Sequence record: NC_028999.1
Reading direction: 5' to 3' (one strand)
DNA length: 64,000 bases
In this document: positions 2,382 to 59,147 of the stretch, one piece after another
How the letters are laid out: each line of letters begins with the position of its first letter
How positions within the stretch are numbered: position 1 is the first letter of the stretch
Program-made: the position numbers and the translations under genes
The notes under the pieces: generated by a model
Told to the model about the DNA's origin: nothing
The model's database searches: none
The model's input: only the letters and a program-made list of their open reading frames with translations

Positions 2382-2629
2382 GCGAAGAAGATTACGTCGC
2401 ATCTCAAATTCAACATGGTATTTGTCAGGAATTCCGTAAGGCTTACAAAGCAAAGATTGCTGTCTACAACTGCGAAGACATGCGAGTCAGCTTGGTCTAC
2501 GAAGATGGCCGTGTTGAACACTACCAACTCCAACACCCGACCGTCGTTTGCGATCCCGATGCTAGTCGTATCGTAGATGTCACCTACGACTTCTCCATGA
2601 TTGTCGGCAACAAACCAACTCTCCACTAA
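2378..2629 (+). CDS. Hypothetical protein
   Basis: ORF track; ATGA overlap with the previous gene. Confidence 0.75.
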   Translation: MSEEDYVASQIQHGICQEFRKAYKAKIAVYNCEDMRVSLVYEDGRVEHYQLQHPTVVCDPDASRIVDVTYDFSMIVGNKPTLH

Positions 2630-2638
2630 GGAAATACA

Positions 2639-4069
2639 ATGCACGCTTATCTCCAGCTGTTGGAAGACATCAAGAAATACGGTGTCTTCAAAGGAGATCG
2701 AACCGGGACTGGTACTCAGTCCCTTTTCGGTCGTCAGTTCCGTTTTGATCTGAAAGACAACAACCTGCCGGTTGTGACCACCAAGTTCGTTCATACCCCG
2801 TCGGTTGAAGTCGAACACGTCTGGATGAAGAACGGTCTCACTAACCTGAAGTTCCTGCTCGATCACAACGTGCGGATCTGGAACGAATGGTGCAAGCCGG
2901 GTACTGAAGTGCGCGTACCGGTGGACGAAGGTGAGCTGGTTGATCTGGTTCAACGCAAGTTCAAGTACGTTGACTTCGAAATGCACCACAGCAATGAAAT
3001 CGAAGAAGACTACAAGTTCATCCTAGATGGTGCTCGTACCAACGGCGAGAAAGGTGCGGTACTGCTGATGAGTGGTAAAGCCTGGATGGATGTCGAGCGT
3101 TTCGGCCCAGGCCCCACTACTTACGACTTCTATGGTCATGCTCGTCGAGTCTGGCAAATCGTCTGCGGAGAAACTACTACCCTTAAAGTAGGGGAAGACG
3201 GCTTTGTTTACCGTCTCGTAGATGGTGATCTGGGTCCGGTGTATGGTAAGACCTGGCGTAATATCGAGGACACTCGGATCATCAAGAAGGCTGAACTCCA
3301 GAACTTCTTGGATCGTAAGTTCACATTCGTGGTGGATGTACCGGGTACATCTCTGGAAACCGATCGAGCTGTAGTTACCCGTAATATCGATCAACTGGCT
3401 GAACTGCTCCATGACCTGGAACACAATCCGGATTCGCGGCGTCTGATCATCTGTGCCTGGGACCCGGCTCTGGTTGATGAACAGGCATTGCCTCCGTGCC
3501 ACGCATTTATTCAGTTCTGGACTCGTAAGCTGGAACTGTCCGAACGTCTGAGTCTGTGGGTTTCCAATAATGCCAATGAATTCATCAAGCATCTGTTGGA
3601 TTATAAGGGGGATTGGCCGACTCAAAACGTTATTGACATCGTCAACACTGGCGAATACCAACAAGTCATTACTCAGGTAGCCGAAAGTGATTGGCTGAAG
3701 TTTGTAGAAGCATCGGGTATTGATCTGACTGGTATTCCTGAACGAGGCATTAGTTGCCAACTCTACCAGCGATCAGTTGACGCATTCCTTGGTTTGCCCT
3801 TTAACATCACCTTCTACTCGATCATGACTCATGCACTGGCCAACCAGTTCAACATGGTTGCAGAAGAGTTCATCTGGACTGGGGGTGATTGCCACATTTA
3901 TTCCAACCACCAAGAACAGACTGATCTACAACTGACTCGGAATACGTTCCCGACTCCGAAGATTCATTTCCGTGAGAAAGGTAAACCGTATCTGGAACTG
4001 GACGTAGGTGATTTCGTGATCGAAGGTTATGAGTATCACCCACACATTGCTGGCAAGGTAGCCGTCTAA
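2639..4069 (+). CDS. thyA: Thymidylate synthase with large insertions
   Basis: DRTGTGT, GDLGPVYG, PDSRRLII, catalytic LPPCH, YQRSVD, GLPFN and GDCHIY motifs. Confidence 0.97.
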   Translation: MHAYLQLLEDIKKYGVFKGDRTGTGTQSLFGRQFRFDLKDNNLPVVTTKFVHTPSVEVEHVWMKNGLTNLKFLLDHNVRIWNEWCKPGTEVRVPVDEGELVDLVQRKFKYVDFEMHHSNEIEEDYKFILDGARTNGEKGAVLLMSGKAWMDVERFGPGPTTYDFYGHARRVWQIVCGETTTLKVGEDGFVYRLVDGDLGPVYGKTWRNIEDTRIIKKAELQNFLDRKFTFVVDVPGTSLETDRAVVTRNIDQLAELLHDLEHNPDSRRLIICAWDPALVDEQALPPCHAFIQFWTRKLELSERLSLWVSNNANEFIKHLLDYKGDWPTQNVIDIVNTGEYQQVITQVAESDWLKFVEASGIDLTGIPERGISCQLYQRSVDAFLGLPFNITFYSIMTHALANQFNMVAEEFIWTGGDCHIYSNHQEQTDLQLTRNTFPTPKIHFREKGKPYLELDVGDFVIEGYEYHPHIAGKVAV

Positions 4070-4329
4070 TGGAAAAGACCACGTTATCGTTGGAAGAACG
4101 TTGTACCTATGGAGCTCGTCAATCGATCCGTAAGGAAAGTGAGGCATCCAATGGGTATTTTGTTTGCAACAGTTTCACAATCGGTAACGTGGCTTCTCTC
4201 AAGATCTGGCAGAAGCCCAATGTCACCGATGAAGAACTACACGTCAAGTTAGATCAGATGGGTTATCCGAAATATCTGGAAGACGTGGATCCTGTTGACC
4301 TTGTTAAACAAGAAGATACCAATGTATAA
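4069..4329 (+). CDS. Hypothetical protein
   Basis: ORF track; TAATG coupling to thyA. Confidence 0.75.
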   Translation: MEKTTLSLEERCTYGARQSIRKESEASNGYFVCNSFTIGNVASLKIWQKPNVTDEELHVKLDQMGYPKYLEDVDPVDLVKQEDTNV

Positions 4330-4549
4330 ACATGTAGTAGATGGAAATGAATTGAGCAGTGCAGCCATTGATGTATTCCGCAGACTGTTCAAGAAAGGTT
4401 CCCAAGATGATGGTGATCTACCGTCCAAGTCGGGGATGCTGGAACTGATCCGTTGTGGCTTCGCCATGAAGGATTACACTATGGAATTACCTAACCGGCT
4501 GACGGTGGTAGGTCAGGAAGCTGCTGAACGTTTCTTTGGAGTACGTTAA
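4322..4549 (+). CDS. Hypothetical protein
   Basis: ORF track; start trimmed to MYKHVV. Confidence 0.75.
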   Translation: MYKHVVDGNELSSAAIDVFRRLFKKGSQDDGDLPSKSGMLELIRCGFAMKDYTMELPNRLTVVGQEAAERFFGVR

Positions 4550-4854
4550 TGCTTGAACAATCCCAGAACTGCTTCAAAATCAACTACGCTGAAATCATCG
4601 GTAACGAAGGTAAAACCGACGGTAAGCCGCTTACTGCTTTCGGTGATGAAGCCGAAGTTCAACGTCGGCTGCAAGAGCTGGTTGACAAAGACATCCTGCG
4701 TTGTTCGATTCATTGGGGCGCGCATGACTACGCCACCTTCGATATCGATGTTCCGGGTACCGACCAGGTTCAAATCCTGAAGCCCGGTGACCGTGTGAAT
4801 TTCGTTGGTGATTCGTACGAAATCGTTATCGATCCATCTAACAAGGAAGAGTAA
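4549..4854 (+). CDS. Hypothetical protein
   Basis: ORF track; TAATG coupling. Confidence 0.8.
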   Translation: MLEQSQNCFKINYAEIIGNEGKTDGKPLTAFGDEAEVQRRLQELVDKDILRCSIHWGAHDYATFDIDVPGTDQVQILKPGDRVNFVGDSYEIVIDPSNKEE

Positions 4855-5540
4855 TGTCTACGACTAGACTGGAATACATCCTCGAAAAGATTGCCATCTC
4901 TGGTAATGGTGAACAATTCAAGCACAACTTCTGTACTTACCGAAATGGTCAAGTACTTGGGTTGGGTCGTCCTGGCGTCACCAGTCGGAAACTACGTGAT
5001 TGGTTGTTCACCCAGAATGCTCACCAGTTCCTGAGTGAAGAGGACATTAGTTATCTGATTCACTGCATGGACGCCTACAGCGCAACTGTGCATGATGACC
5101 TCAATGAGTTCCTTTGTGAGCTGGGTCTGTGGTCTCCGGGGAAAGAATCTCCTGTGGATTGTCTGGCTGCGTTCACCTACCGTCTGTTCCATGGAGACTT
5201 CGTTTCGTACGAGCGTTTCCAGCGTAACAGTCGTTTTGCTGAGGCAGCTTATGGCGCTGATATGGCTACTGAGGTATCTTACAGTAAGCCTATACCAGTA
5301 TTCACCAAGACACTGGAAGAGGCTGACCTCTGGTACGAATTTGGACAAGAGATCGCTCCGATCAATGAAGATGGTATTCGCCGTCTACCTGAGGACAAGA
5401 AGATTGTCCGGGACTGGTTGAACCAGCACAATCTCCCGTTGGTGTACACCTGCTTCGACTTCAGTCCGGAGCCTGTACCCGAGGTTGATGCATCCGATGG
5501 TGAAAAGGTTCAGGAACACAAGTGTGCCATCTGTCAATAA
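4854..5540 (+). CDS. Hypothetical protein
   Basis: ORF track; TAATG coupling. Confidence 0.8.
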   Translation: MSTTRLEYILEKIAISGNGEQFKHNFCTYRNGQVLGLGRPGVTSRKLRDWLFTQNAHQFLSEEDISYLIHCMDAYSATVHDDLNEFLCELGLWSPGKESPVDCLAAFTYRLFHGDFVSYERFQRNSRFAEAAYGADMATEVSYSKPIPVFTKTLEEADLWYEFGQEIAPINEDGIRRLPEDKKIVRDWLNQHNLPLVYTCFDFSPEPVPEVDASDGEKVQEHKCAICQ

Positions 5541-5650
5541 CTACTCAAGTAACGACATGAGGCTAAGGAGAACTCCATGGGTACTCTGAAGACGGACTAC
5601 ATACGCTGCCCCACTCCGCAAGGGGGTGGGGGCGAATGTGAGTCAATCAA

Positions 5651-5908
5651 ATGTCAAGCGACAAATCCAAAAAGCAGTATCGTCATCACCATGAGCAACG
5701 CCACGTTAAAGCACAGGTGGCTATCTGGCGGTTCTACAACCAACAGGCAGCCAGTCTCGACGACCGCCGGCTCGGTCGGATGCGTAAAGAACACGCATTA
5801 AACTGTGGTCGCTCTCACTGTATGCTCTGTGTGAATCCTCGTCGGACTTGGGGTCGTAAGACTCTGGCCGAAAAGGTAGCGGATATTCGCTTTAAGGAAC
5901 AACAATAA
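5651..5908 (+). CDS. Small basic protein with probable Zn site
   Basis: HALNCGRSHCMLCVNPRR...TLAE (H/C-x-CxxC-xNPR pattern). Confidence 0.75.
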   Translation: MSSDKSKKQYRHHHEQRHVKAQVAIWRFYNQQAASLDDRRLGRMRKEHALNCGRSHCMLCVNPRRTWGRKTLAEKVADIRFKEQQ

Positions 5909-5910
5909 TA

Positions 5911-5934
5911 GAGGGGGCTTCGGCCCCTTCTTTT
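5911..5934 (+). terminator. Terminator hairpin
   Basis: GAGGGGGC-TTCG-GCCCCTTC-TTTT. Confidence 0.85.
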
Positions 5935-5954
5935 ATTCCCTCAAGGAAAATACA

Positions 5955-6263
5955 ATGCGGATAAATGATGACATGGGTTACGGGAATCTGATTGACTTCC
6001 CCGAAGAGAAATTCATGAAAGCGGGTGAGTTGGTGCTGATCCGCAAAAGAACTGCCTACGCAGGTGAAACCCCCATTGGGCTTTACCAAGTGGCGGAGGA
6101 TTGTTCTTTACCCAGACGCTACGAAGGGGAAGTCCGTGCAGACCTAGTATGGTCTGCCAAGGATAACGAGAACAGAATGCTGATCGAAGACGTTGAGAAC
6201 CTGGTTGAACAGGGTAAGCTCAAGCCAGTCGAACATACATCTATCTACTATCGGGACGAGTAA
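5955..6263 (+). CDS. Hypothetical protein, KAGE...QGKLKP repeat-domain family
   Basis: Shares the domain with the C-terminus of 6265-6975. Confidence 0.8.
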   Translation: MRINDDMGYGNLIDFPEEKFMKAGELVLIRKRTAYAGETPIGLYQVAEDCSLPRRYEGEVRADLVWSAKDNENRMLIEDVENLVEQGKLKPVEHTSIYYRDE

Positions 6264-6264
6264 C

Positions 6265-6975
6265 ATGTCAATCACAATTATTGTTTTCTCTAAGGAAGAA
6301 CCGAGTGATTCCGACATCATGACGTATGTCGGTGCTATCCCTGGACTCAGTGGAGAAGATTTCCGTTACCGTCTGGCATGGAGACATCGCTGTAATAATG
6401 ACATTCACAGCACCTTGTTTCAGATTTACGATGACGAGCATCATTCCGATAACTGTCATCTGTTGTTCAGGAATGGCCTGGTTACTGTCACAACTATGAC
6501 CGAAATTGCAGAGTTCACTCAGAACCTGCAAGACGAAATTAACTTCTACAGTAGTAACTTTGAGGAAGGGGTTAAAGCCGAAGTTTACTCGATCAGCAAT
6601 GGCGATACCTTGTACATTTTCCCTGATCAGGCCCATCGTGTTCATCATCTTCTTAAAGAAGATCTGAAATTGGTCTCCGACGACGAGAAAGAAGTAGCCG
6701 AATATACGTTGCTGGATAAGGACTATGAACTCAAAGCTGGGGAAATTGTCCAGGTGTACACCCACGTTAAATATGAAGGTGTATACGGCCACGAGTTATA
6801 CGAGGTCATCGAGGACTGCGTTATTCCCAAACGTGCTAGCGGTAGCGTTCTGAATCGCTACTTTGAAAAGGATGGTCGTAGGCAGAGAAACTACGATGAC
6901 GTTCAGACCTTAGTGGACCAAGGCAAACTGAAACCTATTAAATGCACCAGTGTTATCTACAAGGCCGAAATATGA
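6265..6975 (+). CDS. Hypothetical protein with C-terminal KAGE...QGKLKP domain
   Basis: ORF track; start trimmed to MSITII. Confidence 0.8.
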   Translation: MSITIIVFSKEEPSDSDIMTYVGAIPGLSGEDFRYRLAWRHRCNNDIHSTLFQIYDDEHHSDNCHLLFRNGLVTVTTMTEIAEFTQNLQDEINFYSSNFEEGVKAEVYSISNGDTLYIFPDQAHRVHHLLKEDLKLVSDDEKEVAEYTLLDKDYELKAGEIVQVYTHVKYEGVYGHELYEVIEDCVIPKRASGSVLNRYFEKDGRRQRNYDDVQTLVDQGKLKPIKCTSVIYKAEI

Positions 6976-7172
6976 GAAATCCATTTAGTGGCAGCAGTCT
7001 GTTCGACCTCCCTGAAGAAACCCCTGAAGAGAAGCTGCGTGCGATGTTCCATCCCTTCGGCGGTGCTTTCCGCGGCGAGATGAAATCGGATCATGGCGAA
7101 CGTACCAACCGAAAGATCAAAGATCAGCCGTTCTATCAACGTGGTCCGAAGAAGCAGATGAGGAAATACTGA
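6972..7172 (+). CDS. Hypothetical protein
   Basis: ORF track; ATGA overlap. Confidence 0.7.
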   Translation: MRNPFSGSSLFDLPEETPEEKLRAMFHPFGGAFRGEMKSDHGERTNRKIKDQPFYQRGPKKQMRKY

Positions 7173-7438
7173 TGTATCCGTTCGCTATTGCGGTTAGTCA
7201 CGTGATCGCTGTATTCCTCGTCGTCTACGCTGTTGGTGGTATGGTCATTACAGCTCGTCACGTCATTGCCTTCGAGCGAATAAAACGTTTGTTCGCTGAA
7301 GGGAAACTCCAGGAGGTTATCGCCTTTCGAAAGATGACTAAGTACGATACCCAGATGGATGGCCTGACGTATTGGTGTTGTTGGGGGTTGGGTATTACAA
7401 TCGCGATGTTGATCATTGCTGCGGGGTTAGCGCCATGA
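7172..7438 (+). CDS. Membrane protein (2 TM)
   Basis: Two hydrophobic segments; TGATG coupling. Confidence 0.8.
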   Translation: MYPFAIAVSHVIAVFLVVYAVGGMVITARHVIAFERIKRLFAEGKLQEVIAFRKMTKYDTQMDGLTYWCCWGLGITIAMLIIAAGLAP

Positions 7439-49345: not shown

Positions 49346-49452
49346 TAGGCTCATCAGTAATGAATTTTGCCAGCGCACATTTAGGAGGCGACAACTGTTA
49401 ATAGGTCGGGGGTGATAGCATTTGGGCCCAGTCTTTAACAGTGTCGCCAATT

Positions 49453-49541: not shown

Positions 49542-49549
49542 ATTGTACA

Positions 49550-49641
49550 TTAGTCGTAACGATGTTTTAACCAGCGTAAACTACCGGCCCGAAGGTGGGC
49601 CGCCCGAGGGTGTTGAACCCCCGATTCTTCGTTACGACTAA
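49550..49641 (-). ncRNA. Circularly permuted, anticodon-less tRNA-like RNA
   Basis: 13-bp terminal stem enclosing a T-arm, a loop-closed acceptor-like stem and a D-arm, in that order. Confidence 0.75.
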
Positions 49642-49652
49642 ATTTCTGAATA

Positions 49653-49729
<77 letters not shown>

Positions 49730-49730
49730 A

Positions 49731-49821
49731 ATATGTGACTAGGTAGAACGAGTGCACTTTTCGCATCCAATCAACCCAAGTTAGGAAGATAGATACCACG
49801 CGCAATACCCTAGTCACATAT
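49731..49821 (-). ncRNA. Stem-closed leader RNA of the Thr/Ser tRNA operon
   Basis: 13-bp inverted repeat ATATGTGACTAGG/CCTAGTCACATAT between the promoter and tRNA-Thr. Confidence 0.55.
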
Positions 49822-54025: not shown

Positions 54026-54111
54026 TGGTGGTTGAAGGAAGGAATTGAACCTCTAGCCTAGGCGGGGGTGTTACAGACCCCTGACAGTAGCCATCTGTCT
54101 ATACATCAACC
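54026..54111 (-). tRNA. tRNA-Tyr(GTA), non-canonical
   Basis: GGGGT-CT-GTA-AC-ACCCC, variable arm, TTCAATT, ACCA end; atypical D-arm and acceptor. Confidence 0.8.
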
Positions 54112-54118
54112 GAAGGTG

Positions 54119-54342: not shown

Positions 54343-54469
54343 AGGAAATTTGACGGTTTGCTTTTTCAGAGTGGGGGAACACCGACAACCCTCTCACCAA
54401 TGCAAGCGTTTGCTCACCTGGCTTTGCGAGGACAGAATCGTTAGCCCAGTGGGCGATTGCATTTCCTCG

Positions 54470-54494
54470 TATACTATTACATACTGAGTAAGTT
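54470..54494 (-). promoter_or_regulatory. Bipartite promoter
   Basis: AACTTACTC-N12-TATACG. Confidence 0.7.
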
Positions 54495-57900: not shown

Positions 57901-57938
57901 GACATAAAGGAAGTAGCCACCGCTACTTCCTTTATTTA
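57901..57938 (-). terminator. Terminator after tRNA-Leu
   Basis: ATAAAGGAAGTAGC-GGTG-GCTACTTCCTTTAT-GTC. Confidence 0.85.
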
Positions 57939-57940
57939 AT

Positions 57941-58025
57941 TGGTACCCGAAGTGGGACTCGAACCCACACGTCACAAGGACAACTGATTTTAAGTCAGCA
58001 GCGGCTGCCTTTACGCCATTCGGGC
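57941..58025 (-). tRNA. tRNA-Leu(TAA)
   Basis: GCCCGAA acceptor, GCTGA-CT-TAA-AA-TCAGT, variable arm, GTGGG-TTCGAGT-CCCAC, ACCA. Confidence 0.95.
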
Positions 58026-58170
58026 ATATAGAGAACAGACGACAAGGCCATGTTGTAGCTTTCGCTAGTTATACGTATCTCATTCCCTAGGGAAGTGCCT
58101 AACGGCTTCTTTCGTACAACATTCATGGCTTTACAGACGTTGCTCAGCCCTCGTGAGCTGTTCTCTACAT
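58026..58170 (-). ncRNA. Stem-closed multi-branched RNA upstream of tRNA-Leu (~145 nt)
   Basis: 13-bp terminal stem with a G.U pair on the - strand; GCCATG/CATGGC; TAGC-GAAA-GCTA; GCC-GTTA-GGC; TTCCC-TA-GGGAA. Confidence 0.65.
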
Positions 58171-58193
58171 ATTAGATAACACTTGAGTATTAT
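58168..58193 (-). promoter_or_regulatory. Bipartite promoter
   Basis: ATAATACTC-N13-TATG. Confidence 0.65.
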
Positions 58194-58912: not shown

Positions 58913-58965
58913 GGTTGTTTCCTTTTAGAGGGGATTTCATGAGATTAAACGTATCAGTAAAATAC

Positions 58966-59002
58966 AACATAAAGCCCCTCCCGAAGGAGGGGCTGTTATG
59001 CC
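58966..59002 (-). terminator. GGCATAA-hairpin-TTTATGTT element
   Basis: AGCCCCTCC-TTCG-GGAGGGGCT on the - strand. Confidence 0.85.
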
Positions 59003-59126
59003 AACCATCAACACAACAAGGAGAATCCCTCGACAGTGAGTCTTGCTCACTAGAAGCCACTTGGAAGGGTTAGTGGCTCCGGCGCGCCGAGTGTAGGAGA
59101 ACGAGGAGTAGGCATTCTTCTACATA
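58966..59126 (-). ncRNA. Candidate sRNA (~160 nt) with three CUCCU motifs
   Basis: Promoter at 59123-59147 and terminator at 58966-59002; hairpins AGCCACT/AGTGGCT and AGTGAG/CTCACT. Confidence 0.55.
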
Positions 59127-59147
59127 ACATTACATATTGAGTAACTT
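59123..59147 (-). promoter_or_regulatory. Bipartite promoter
   Basis: AAGTTACTC-N12-TATG. Confidence 0.7.

Follow-up and report, generated by a model that had tools for sequence, protein, structure and literature searches.

The tRNA-Leu unit of phage PhiPA3

What does phage PhiPA3 make from the gap between gp373 and tRNA-Leu, for which NC_028999 carries no annotated feature, and what purpose might the product serve? An initial annotation of this DNA had proposed that the gap gives rise to a 145-nt multi-branched RNA on the minus strand, which starts at a promoter TATG, abuts the tRNA and is released by RNase P. The 411 nt around the leader show 100% identity with Pseudomonas phage PhiPA3 (NC_028999, 309,208 bp, genus Miltoncavirus), a jumbo phage of the phiKZ-like, nucleus-forming type. 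The whole stretch of DNA that was analysed (64 kb; termed the window, to which coordinates refer unless stated otherwise) corresponds to positions 245209-309208 of its genome. The annotated order on the minus strand is gp375 (a homologue of phiKZ gp303), gp374, gp373 and tRNA-Leu, followed by gp372 on the opposite strand. The gp371-gp374 proteins yielded no significant Pfam domain, with one match below threshold, and gave no hint of an RNA partner.

The locus is a one-gene tRNA-Leu(UAA) transcription unit, composed of a promoter, an oversized leader of 143 nt, the tRNA and a terminator, all on the minus strand. Downstream of the gp373 stop codon (58190-58192), a motif search and the ends of RNA contigs place a promoter-like element, TACTCA-A-GTGT-N7-TATG, at 58168-58189. 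It is followed by the primary 5' leader of the pre-tRNA-Leu (143 nt; 58026-58168), delineated by its fold and by RNA contigs, which directly adjoins the tRNA on the same strand (58026 against G1 at 58025). The tRNA itself, with an encoded CCA (57941-58025), was called by ARAGORN and scores 50.7 bits with the Rfam tRNA model, while an inverted repeat at 57904-57935 forms the terminator hairpin, a perfect 14-bp stem followed by UUUAUGU. When the transcript of the whole unit (58168 to approximately 57890) was folded, leader, cloverleaf and terminator emerged as three independent modules. The tRNA calls, the inverted repeat and the folds thus bear out the positions and the strand that had been assigned to these features.

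Predicted fold of the leader

The arms of the inverted repeat that frames the leader were located at 58026-58047 and 58149-58170 by a repeat finder. The minus strand of this 145-mer folds at -47.8 kcal/mol (z = -3.9), a value equalled by none of 200 shuffles, while the plus strand reaches -41.2 kcal/mol (z = -2.4). Furthermore, four of the 42 pairs in the minimum free energy (MFE) structure are G.U pairs, which become A.C mismatches on the plus strand. The earlier description of a 13-bp DNA stem, whose single plus-strand mismatch is a G.U pair on the minus strand, is accurate, and the minus strand is the one that folds better. The 143-nt leader taken alone folds at -46.4 kcal/mol (z = -3.5; 0 of 200 shuffles equal it), and its fold exceeds chance expectation.

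The terminal helix, P1, joins RNA positions 1-11 (58158-58168) to positions 131-141 (58028-58038) with pair probabilities of 0.91-1.0, both arms being part of the inverted repeat, and leaves two unpaired nucleotides (A, U) between its 3' arm and G1 of the tRNA. A closing helix of at least 11 bp was obtained in 0 of 300 dinucleotide shuffles. Since the outermost two base pairs of the DNA repeat precede the transcript start, the terminal helix measures 11 bp in the RNA against 13 in the DNA; the RNA and its terminal helix stand as proposed, with the length revised from 145 nt to about 140-142 nt and the stem shortened accordingly. Within the helix, the leader holds several stable helices, including one GNRA tetraloop hairpin (UAGC-GAAA-GCUA). 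This hairpin and the GCC-GUUA-GGC and UUCC(C)/(G)GGAA hairpins, all of which had been noted from the sequence, are present in both the MFE and the centroid structure. The inner GCCAUG/CAUGGC helix survives in part, as four of its six pairs are retained in the centroid and a rival pairing competes with it.

RNA evidence from infected cells

RNA data for PhiPA3-infected cells were taken from one public study, comprising two RIP-seq libraries and one RNA-seq library. These libraries match the ChmC eCLIP study (PMC11077065) and were used as assembled contigs, which were placed on the 2.5 kb of the window between 57000 and 59500. Within this region, the segment 57941-58168, which comprises the leader and the tRNA, is almost the sole part assembled in all three libraries. 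The RIP-seq libraries produced leader contigs at 58029-58087, 58058-58107 and 58078-58168, and the RNA-seq library a contig at 57941-58135. None of the leader contigs runs past the G of TATG at 58168. On the 3' side of the RNA, contigs with Illumina adapter sequence place junctions at 58027 and 58029, 1-3 nt before the tRNA. Together, the contig stop and the adapter junctions give an RNA of about 140-142 nt, the accumulating form of the leader (minus strand, 58168 to 58027/58029).

The junction between leader and tRNA is crossed by the contigs 57941-58045 and 57941-58135, as expected of a precursor, bearing in mind that contigs are not single molecules. One further contig joins 58025 back to 57941, giving G1 and the encoded CCA as the ends of the mature tRNA; it probably represents mature tRNA that was circularised by library ligation. 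A rare contig (depth 5) omits 34 nt within the leader, 58106-58141, and is probably the product of a reverse-transcription jump across a helix.

Word depths in one library amounted to ~2,400-7,200 for the leader contigs, 148 for the tRNA contig and 6 for the neighbouring gene. Contig depth is a poor measure; it may be inflated here, as structured RNA withstands the RNase treatment in eCLIP, and mature tRNAs are copied poorly. Assembled contigs, here all from a single study, are no strict proof of where an RNA starts or ends or of its level; what they support is the presence, the prominence and the approximate ends of the leader RNA. The proposal of a discrete, accumulating minus-strand RNA that extends from TATG to the 5' processing site of the tRNA is thus supported by both contig and adapter ends. 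The authors of the eCLIP study reported unannotated short RNAs with high coverage, which they suggested to be bound by ChmC; the leader RNA is not named among them (PMC11077065).

A promoter class that precedes stable RNAs

The element upstream of the leader was generalised to the pattern TACTCA N0-3 RTRT N5-8 TATR. Four matches occur in the 64-kb window, against 0.04 expected, and the whole 309-kb genome holds only four, all on the minus strand (genome positions 295025, 299678, 303376 and 304331); as the pattern was derived from these same four sites, the fit is partly circular, and its informative part is the absence of other matches in 309 kb. The four matches precede the tRNA-Thr, tRNA-Asn and tRNA-Leu units and an sRNA (59123 in the window), which suggests that TACTCA-type promoters form a subclass reserved for stable RNAs in PhiPA3. 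The final G of TATG, 58168, is most likely the transcript start.

TATG is the core of late and middle starts of the phiKZ type. Elements of similar make, RTRT-N7-TATR, stand before the first tRNAs of 201phi2-1, Viktualia, Psa21, RVTF4, PA1C and phiKZ. The tRNA-Leu of 201phi2-1 has been shown by cap-selective long-read sequencing to be transcribed from a middle promoter (PMC11512511), and the tRNAs of phiKZ are lost if the phage nucleus cannot form, which is consistent with transcription by the non-virion polymerase (PMC12571901). The assignment of the TATG as a promoter is hence backed by the four-match motif before tRNA and sRNA units as well as by its likeness to the sequences upstream of tRNAs in related phages. 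A second TATG is found on the same strand at 58025-58028, where it is made up of the last three leader bases and G1 of the tRNA; the upstream part of the motif is unmatched at this site. A minor start at tRNA +1, yielding a leaderless tRNA, is conceivable.

Search for relatives of the leader

The leader was compared with known RNA families and with phage, metagenome and bacterial sequences. Rfam 15, applied to the whole window at gathering score and to a 701-nt slice at E <= 10 with lax filters, returned only tRNA matches, and the best match inside the leader, to U6atac, scored 15 bits against a gathering score of 33, as expected by chance. In a distant BLAST search of the 411 nt against 50,697 phage records, other phages matched only over the tRNA. 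We also built a covariance model from the single leader sequence and its centroid structure, which recovered itself at 181 bits as a positive control and gave no further match in PhiPA3, 201phi2-1, Psa21, D6, Viktualia, RVTF4, PA1C or phiKZ. Within the PhiPA3 genome, both BLAST and the covariance model found the locus itself and no paralogue, and BLAST returned no extended antisense match to the leader in the phage genome.

Exact-pattern scans of IMG/VR gave 0 matches for two patterns and two for a junction 20-mer; the latter lie inside coding DNA of unrelated AT-rich contigs and were dismissed as chance. A pattern from the 3' half of the tRNA had 12 matches in JGI/ENA metagenomes, none of which resembles the PhiPA3 tRNA-Leu or its leader and most of which look like bacterial tRNA-Leu, while an exact-pattern scan of GTDB genomes gave 0 matches. 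The gp373 protein, employed as a handle, had no match in IMG/VR, and its homologues in six relatives are not followed by a tRNA. Finally, local alignment of the leader with 58 phage tRNAs and with other PhiPA3 spacers gave scores no better than those of shuffles. By these comparisons, the leader is a separate, lineage-specific RNA.

The phiKZ TU237 sRNA and its orthologue in PhiPA3

A 141-nt sRNA of phiKZ, TU237, lies upstream of PHIKZ302 and near tRNA-Leu, and has been validated by Northern blot (10.1101/2023.10.13.562163). It resembles the PhiPA3 leader in size, in its near-identical promoter and first bases (TATCTAATAT(T)ATGTAGA), in its tRNA-Leu neighbourhood and in having its 5' end locked in a helix. 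In TU237, however, this helix is a local hairpin and the RNA ends at an intrinsic terminator, whereas in the leader the helix closes the whole RNA, which ends at the 5' processing site of the tRNA. Moreover, the TU237 core, CGGAGCCA..CCCTTCCA..TGGCT with its hairpin, and the terminator are absent from the Leu leader.

Orthology of the leader with TU237 was rejected, as the true PhiPA3 orthologue was found 0.8 kb upstream: an unannotated sRNA gene between gp375 and gp374 (58955-59145, minus strand), which aligns with the TU237 sRNA and with a PA1C RNA. This gene, located just downstream of the gp303 homologue, possesses a TACTCA-type promoter, a 5' hairpin, the same core and an intrinsic terminator. 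The PA1C homologue of TU237 is positioned directly upstream of tRNA-Leu. No contig covers 58955-59145 in the three RNA libraries, a gap in contigs that proves nothing.

Sealed leaders of other PhiPA3 tRNA units

The same promoter type and the same end-to-end pairing recur in the leaders of tRNA-Thr (88 nt, z = -4.8; 49730-49817, minus strand) and tRNA-Asn (128 nt; 54343-54470, minus strand). In PhiPA3, each of the three promoter-proximal tRNA leaders is sealed by a helix between its 5' and 3' ends that comes within 5 nt of the tRNA; for Asn the helix reaches the tRNA, and for Thr it stops 5 nt short. The closing helices measure 9 bp (Thr), 7 bp (Asn) and 11 bp (Leu), and were matched in 1, 3 and 0 of 300 shuffles, respectively. 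The counterpart leaders in seven related phages are 4-46 nt long (89 nt in 201phi2-1), mostly unclosed and mostly unstructured. Long sealed leaders are thus a speciality of PhiPA3, and the Leu leader is the largest of them.

Structured elements also lie between and behind tRNA genes of the minus strand. The spacer between tRNA-Thr and tRNA-Ser (49542-49652) has a 13-bp terminal helix (z = -5.5) and a T-arm-like GGGGGUUCAACACCCUC hairpin, and a long imperfect hairpin, GGCGACACUGUUAA.../...UUAACAGUUGUCGCC (z = -3.8), is situated directly 3' of tRNA-Ser at 49375-49452. ARAGORN additionally calls a divergent tRNA-Tyr(GUA) at 54030-54112 (minus strand), which is below the gathering score of the Rfam tRNA model and bears the RefSeq label pseudo tRNA-Val. 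Its acceptor stem seems to start 2-3 nt upstream of the ARAGORN start (GGUUGAU.../...UUCAACC-A-CCA), as in the tRNA-Tyr of Viktualia.

Proposed origin and fate of the leader RNA

The reading that we favour, and hold to be probable, is that the RNA is a stable pre-tRNA leader; this would account for its origin and fate, with a role in cis as the probable purpose. Transcription would start at the G of TATG. Judging from the analogous cases of phiKZ and 201phi2-1, the non-virion RNA polymerase of the phage would carry it out, in the middle phase of infection. The first 11 nt of the leader would then pair with its last nucleotides, creating a closed, multi-branched 5'-terminal domain that folds apart from the tRNA. 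Bacterial RNase P makes the 5' ends of tRNAs and favours U at -1. Host RNase P would cut between 58026 and 58025 and so free the tRNA; we infer this step from the mapped ends (58025 for the mature tRNA, 58027/58029 for the leader), the U at -1, the encoded CCA and the general course of bacterial tRNA maturation. Exonucleases would subsequently remove 1-3 nt from the leader, down to where the helix begins, and the sealed RNA would persist and accumulate at 140-142 nt.

Such persistence would be explained by two features: neither terminus is single-stranded and open to RNase E, RppH or 3' exonucleases, and the helices are too short for RNase III. It is well established that 5'-terminal stem-loops protect RNAs against 5'-end-dependent decay and that 3' exonucleases require a single-stranded tail. 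The Dip protein of phiKZ, as cited in PMC8244752, inhibits the degradosome. The selected role of the leader would most likely be exercised in cis, by shielding the 5' end of the precursor and by insulating the folding of the tRNA. Some points weigh on the other side. Related phages make do with leaders of 4-46 nt, and the elaborate 143-nt fold goes beyond the needs of 5'-end protection, which hints at an extra function, and the phage, IMG/VR, metagenome and GTDB searches, which returned no homologue of the leader, also count against this explanation.

Alternative explanations

The leader may instead be the actual gene product, a trans-acting sRNA or RNP component, for instance a ligand of ChmC, a nucleus-associated protein that binds RNA, or a sponge for another protein, with the tRNA doubling as its 3'-end processing signal, much as mascRNA does for MALAT1. 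We regard this as a possible but rather unlikely alternative. In length and in the elaborateness of its fold, with its GNRA hairpin and a number of stable helices, the leader far exceeds the tRNA leaders of related phages; it stands out in RIP-seq (eCLIP) libraries whose authors suggested that ChmC binds short RNAs (PMC11077065); and phiKZ-like phages make abundant structured sRNAs of similar size (10.1101/2023.10.13.562163). However, the leader is conserved nowhere among the records searched and lacks an extended antisense match in the phage genome. Contig depth is unusable as a measure of enrichment, and the IP and control libraries are indistinguishable in the contig data. Besides, any by-product that resists nucleases should be abundant if its tRNA gene is strongly transcribed. 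A broader version, to which we would give similarly limited credence, holds that the tRNA units of PhiPA3 are processing cassettes for functional structured RNAs, the Leu leader being a trans-acting RNA with a 3' end made by RNase P. Once released, it might, for example, serve as a ligand or sponge of ChmC or another protein, or the leader might act as a handle that takes the pre-tRNA from the phage nucleus to cytoplasmic RNase P.

Three further readings fare considerably worse. The initial annotation had raised the idea of an RNA polymerase decoy and had named 6S RNA (RF00013) for comparison: size range and paired termini are comparable, and the terminal helix holds an RNA version of the promoter start region. 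Yet neither RF00013 nor any other family matched in the covariance search, even under lax filters and at E <= 10, and the rod shape once ascribed to the RNA gives way to a closed multi-branch with three or four hairpins, whereas 6S RNA is a long rod with a central bubble that resembles an open promoter; a 6S-like function is thus very improbable. It is just as hard to credit a regulatory leader, that is an attenuator, riboswitch or leader-peptide switch gating transcription into the tRNA, as might be suspected of any long structured leader in this position. Neither the sequence nor the fold of the leader shows a terminator-like hairpin and U-tract anywhere from the start to the tRNA, the sole ORF of the region (43 aa; 57995-58126) has no Shine-Dalgarno sequence and continues into the tRNA, a single closed fold dominates in place of two competing ones, and the leader-tRNA junction is spanned by a contig. 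Finally, the 13-bp terminal inverted repeats, the length of 145 bp and the lineage-specific occurrence, with the element missing from equivalent places in relatives, could be those of a feature of the DNA, be it a small mobile element, an insertion scar or decayed tRNA genes. This, too, is highly unlikely: the element is single-copy in the genome by BLAST and the covariance model, has no copies in the other records searched and is no more similar to 58 phage tRNAs than shuffled controls are, while its G.U pairs favour the RNA strand, its repeat ends fall exactly on the promoter start and on tRNA +1, and abundant RNA is made from it.

Significance

PhiPA3 is a model nucleus-forming jumbo phage without a published transcript map. 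The present analysis contributes two items to this model: an RNA that lacks annotation, is evidently very abundant and has its ends mapped, and a type of promoter that PhiPA3 reserves for tRNA and sRNA units. It also leads to the question as to how, in these phages, precursors travel from the phage nucleus, where tRNAs are synthesised by the phage polymerase, to host RNase P, which is presumably located outside, and whether this journey involves the sealed leaders of PhiPA3, which at 88, 128 and 143 nt are oversized by comparison with the 4-46 nt of relatives. Should the leader be only a nuclease-resistant by-product, it would remain a helpful natural illustration of the way in which an RNA gains stability in infected cells once both its ends are sealed.

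Comparison with known systems

Several systems share parts of the logic of a stable leader processed from a pre-tRNA. Ever since T4, phages have been known to yield stable RNAs from their tRNA operons: T4, a member of a different phage family, makes the species 1 and 2 RNAs (rnaC and rnaD), which are stable, roughly 120-140 nt long, co-transcribed with tRNAs and excised by host tRNA-processing enzymes; they lie within or after the tRNA cluster and are not a 5' leader. In E. coli, 3'ETS-leuZ, a 3' trailer that pairs with sRNAs through Hfq, demonstrates that a by-product of tRNA processing can be functional. In mammals, RNase P cuts at the tRNA-like element of MALAT1/mascRNA and thereby makes the 3' end of the upstream RNA, the same 3'-end logic as proposed for the PhiPA3 leader, but in a eukaryotic setting.

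A close parallel is an sRNA that derives from a 5'UTR and directly precedes a tRNA in 201phi2-1; PAK_P3 offers a similar case (PMC11512511). Like the PhiPA3 leader, the 201phi2-1 sRNA is short and abundant and comes from the beginning of a tRNA transcription unit in a phiKZ-like phage, and the core of the middle-type promoter of the 201phi2-1 tRNA-Leu, GTGTAATACTATATG, closely resembles that of PhiPA3, GTGTTATCTAATATG. The two RNAs nevertheless share no homology of sequence or structure. The 201phi2-1 leader, of 89 nt, is not closed end-to-end, whereas the Leu leader of PhiPA3 is, and the 3' end of the 201phi2-1 sRNA has been ascribed to premature termination (PMC11512511), while that of the PhiPA3 leader is the tRNA processing site. 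As far as we found, what is new here is an unannotated and apparently undescribed member from PhiPA3 that stands without relatives; the kind of RNA to which it belongs, the tRNA-leader sRNA, is already known from 201phi2-1 and PAK_P3.
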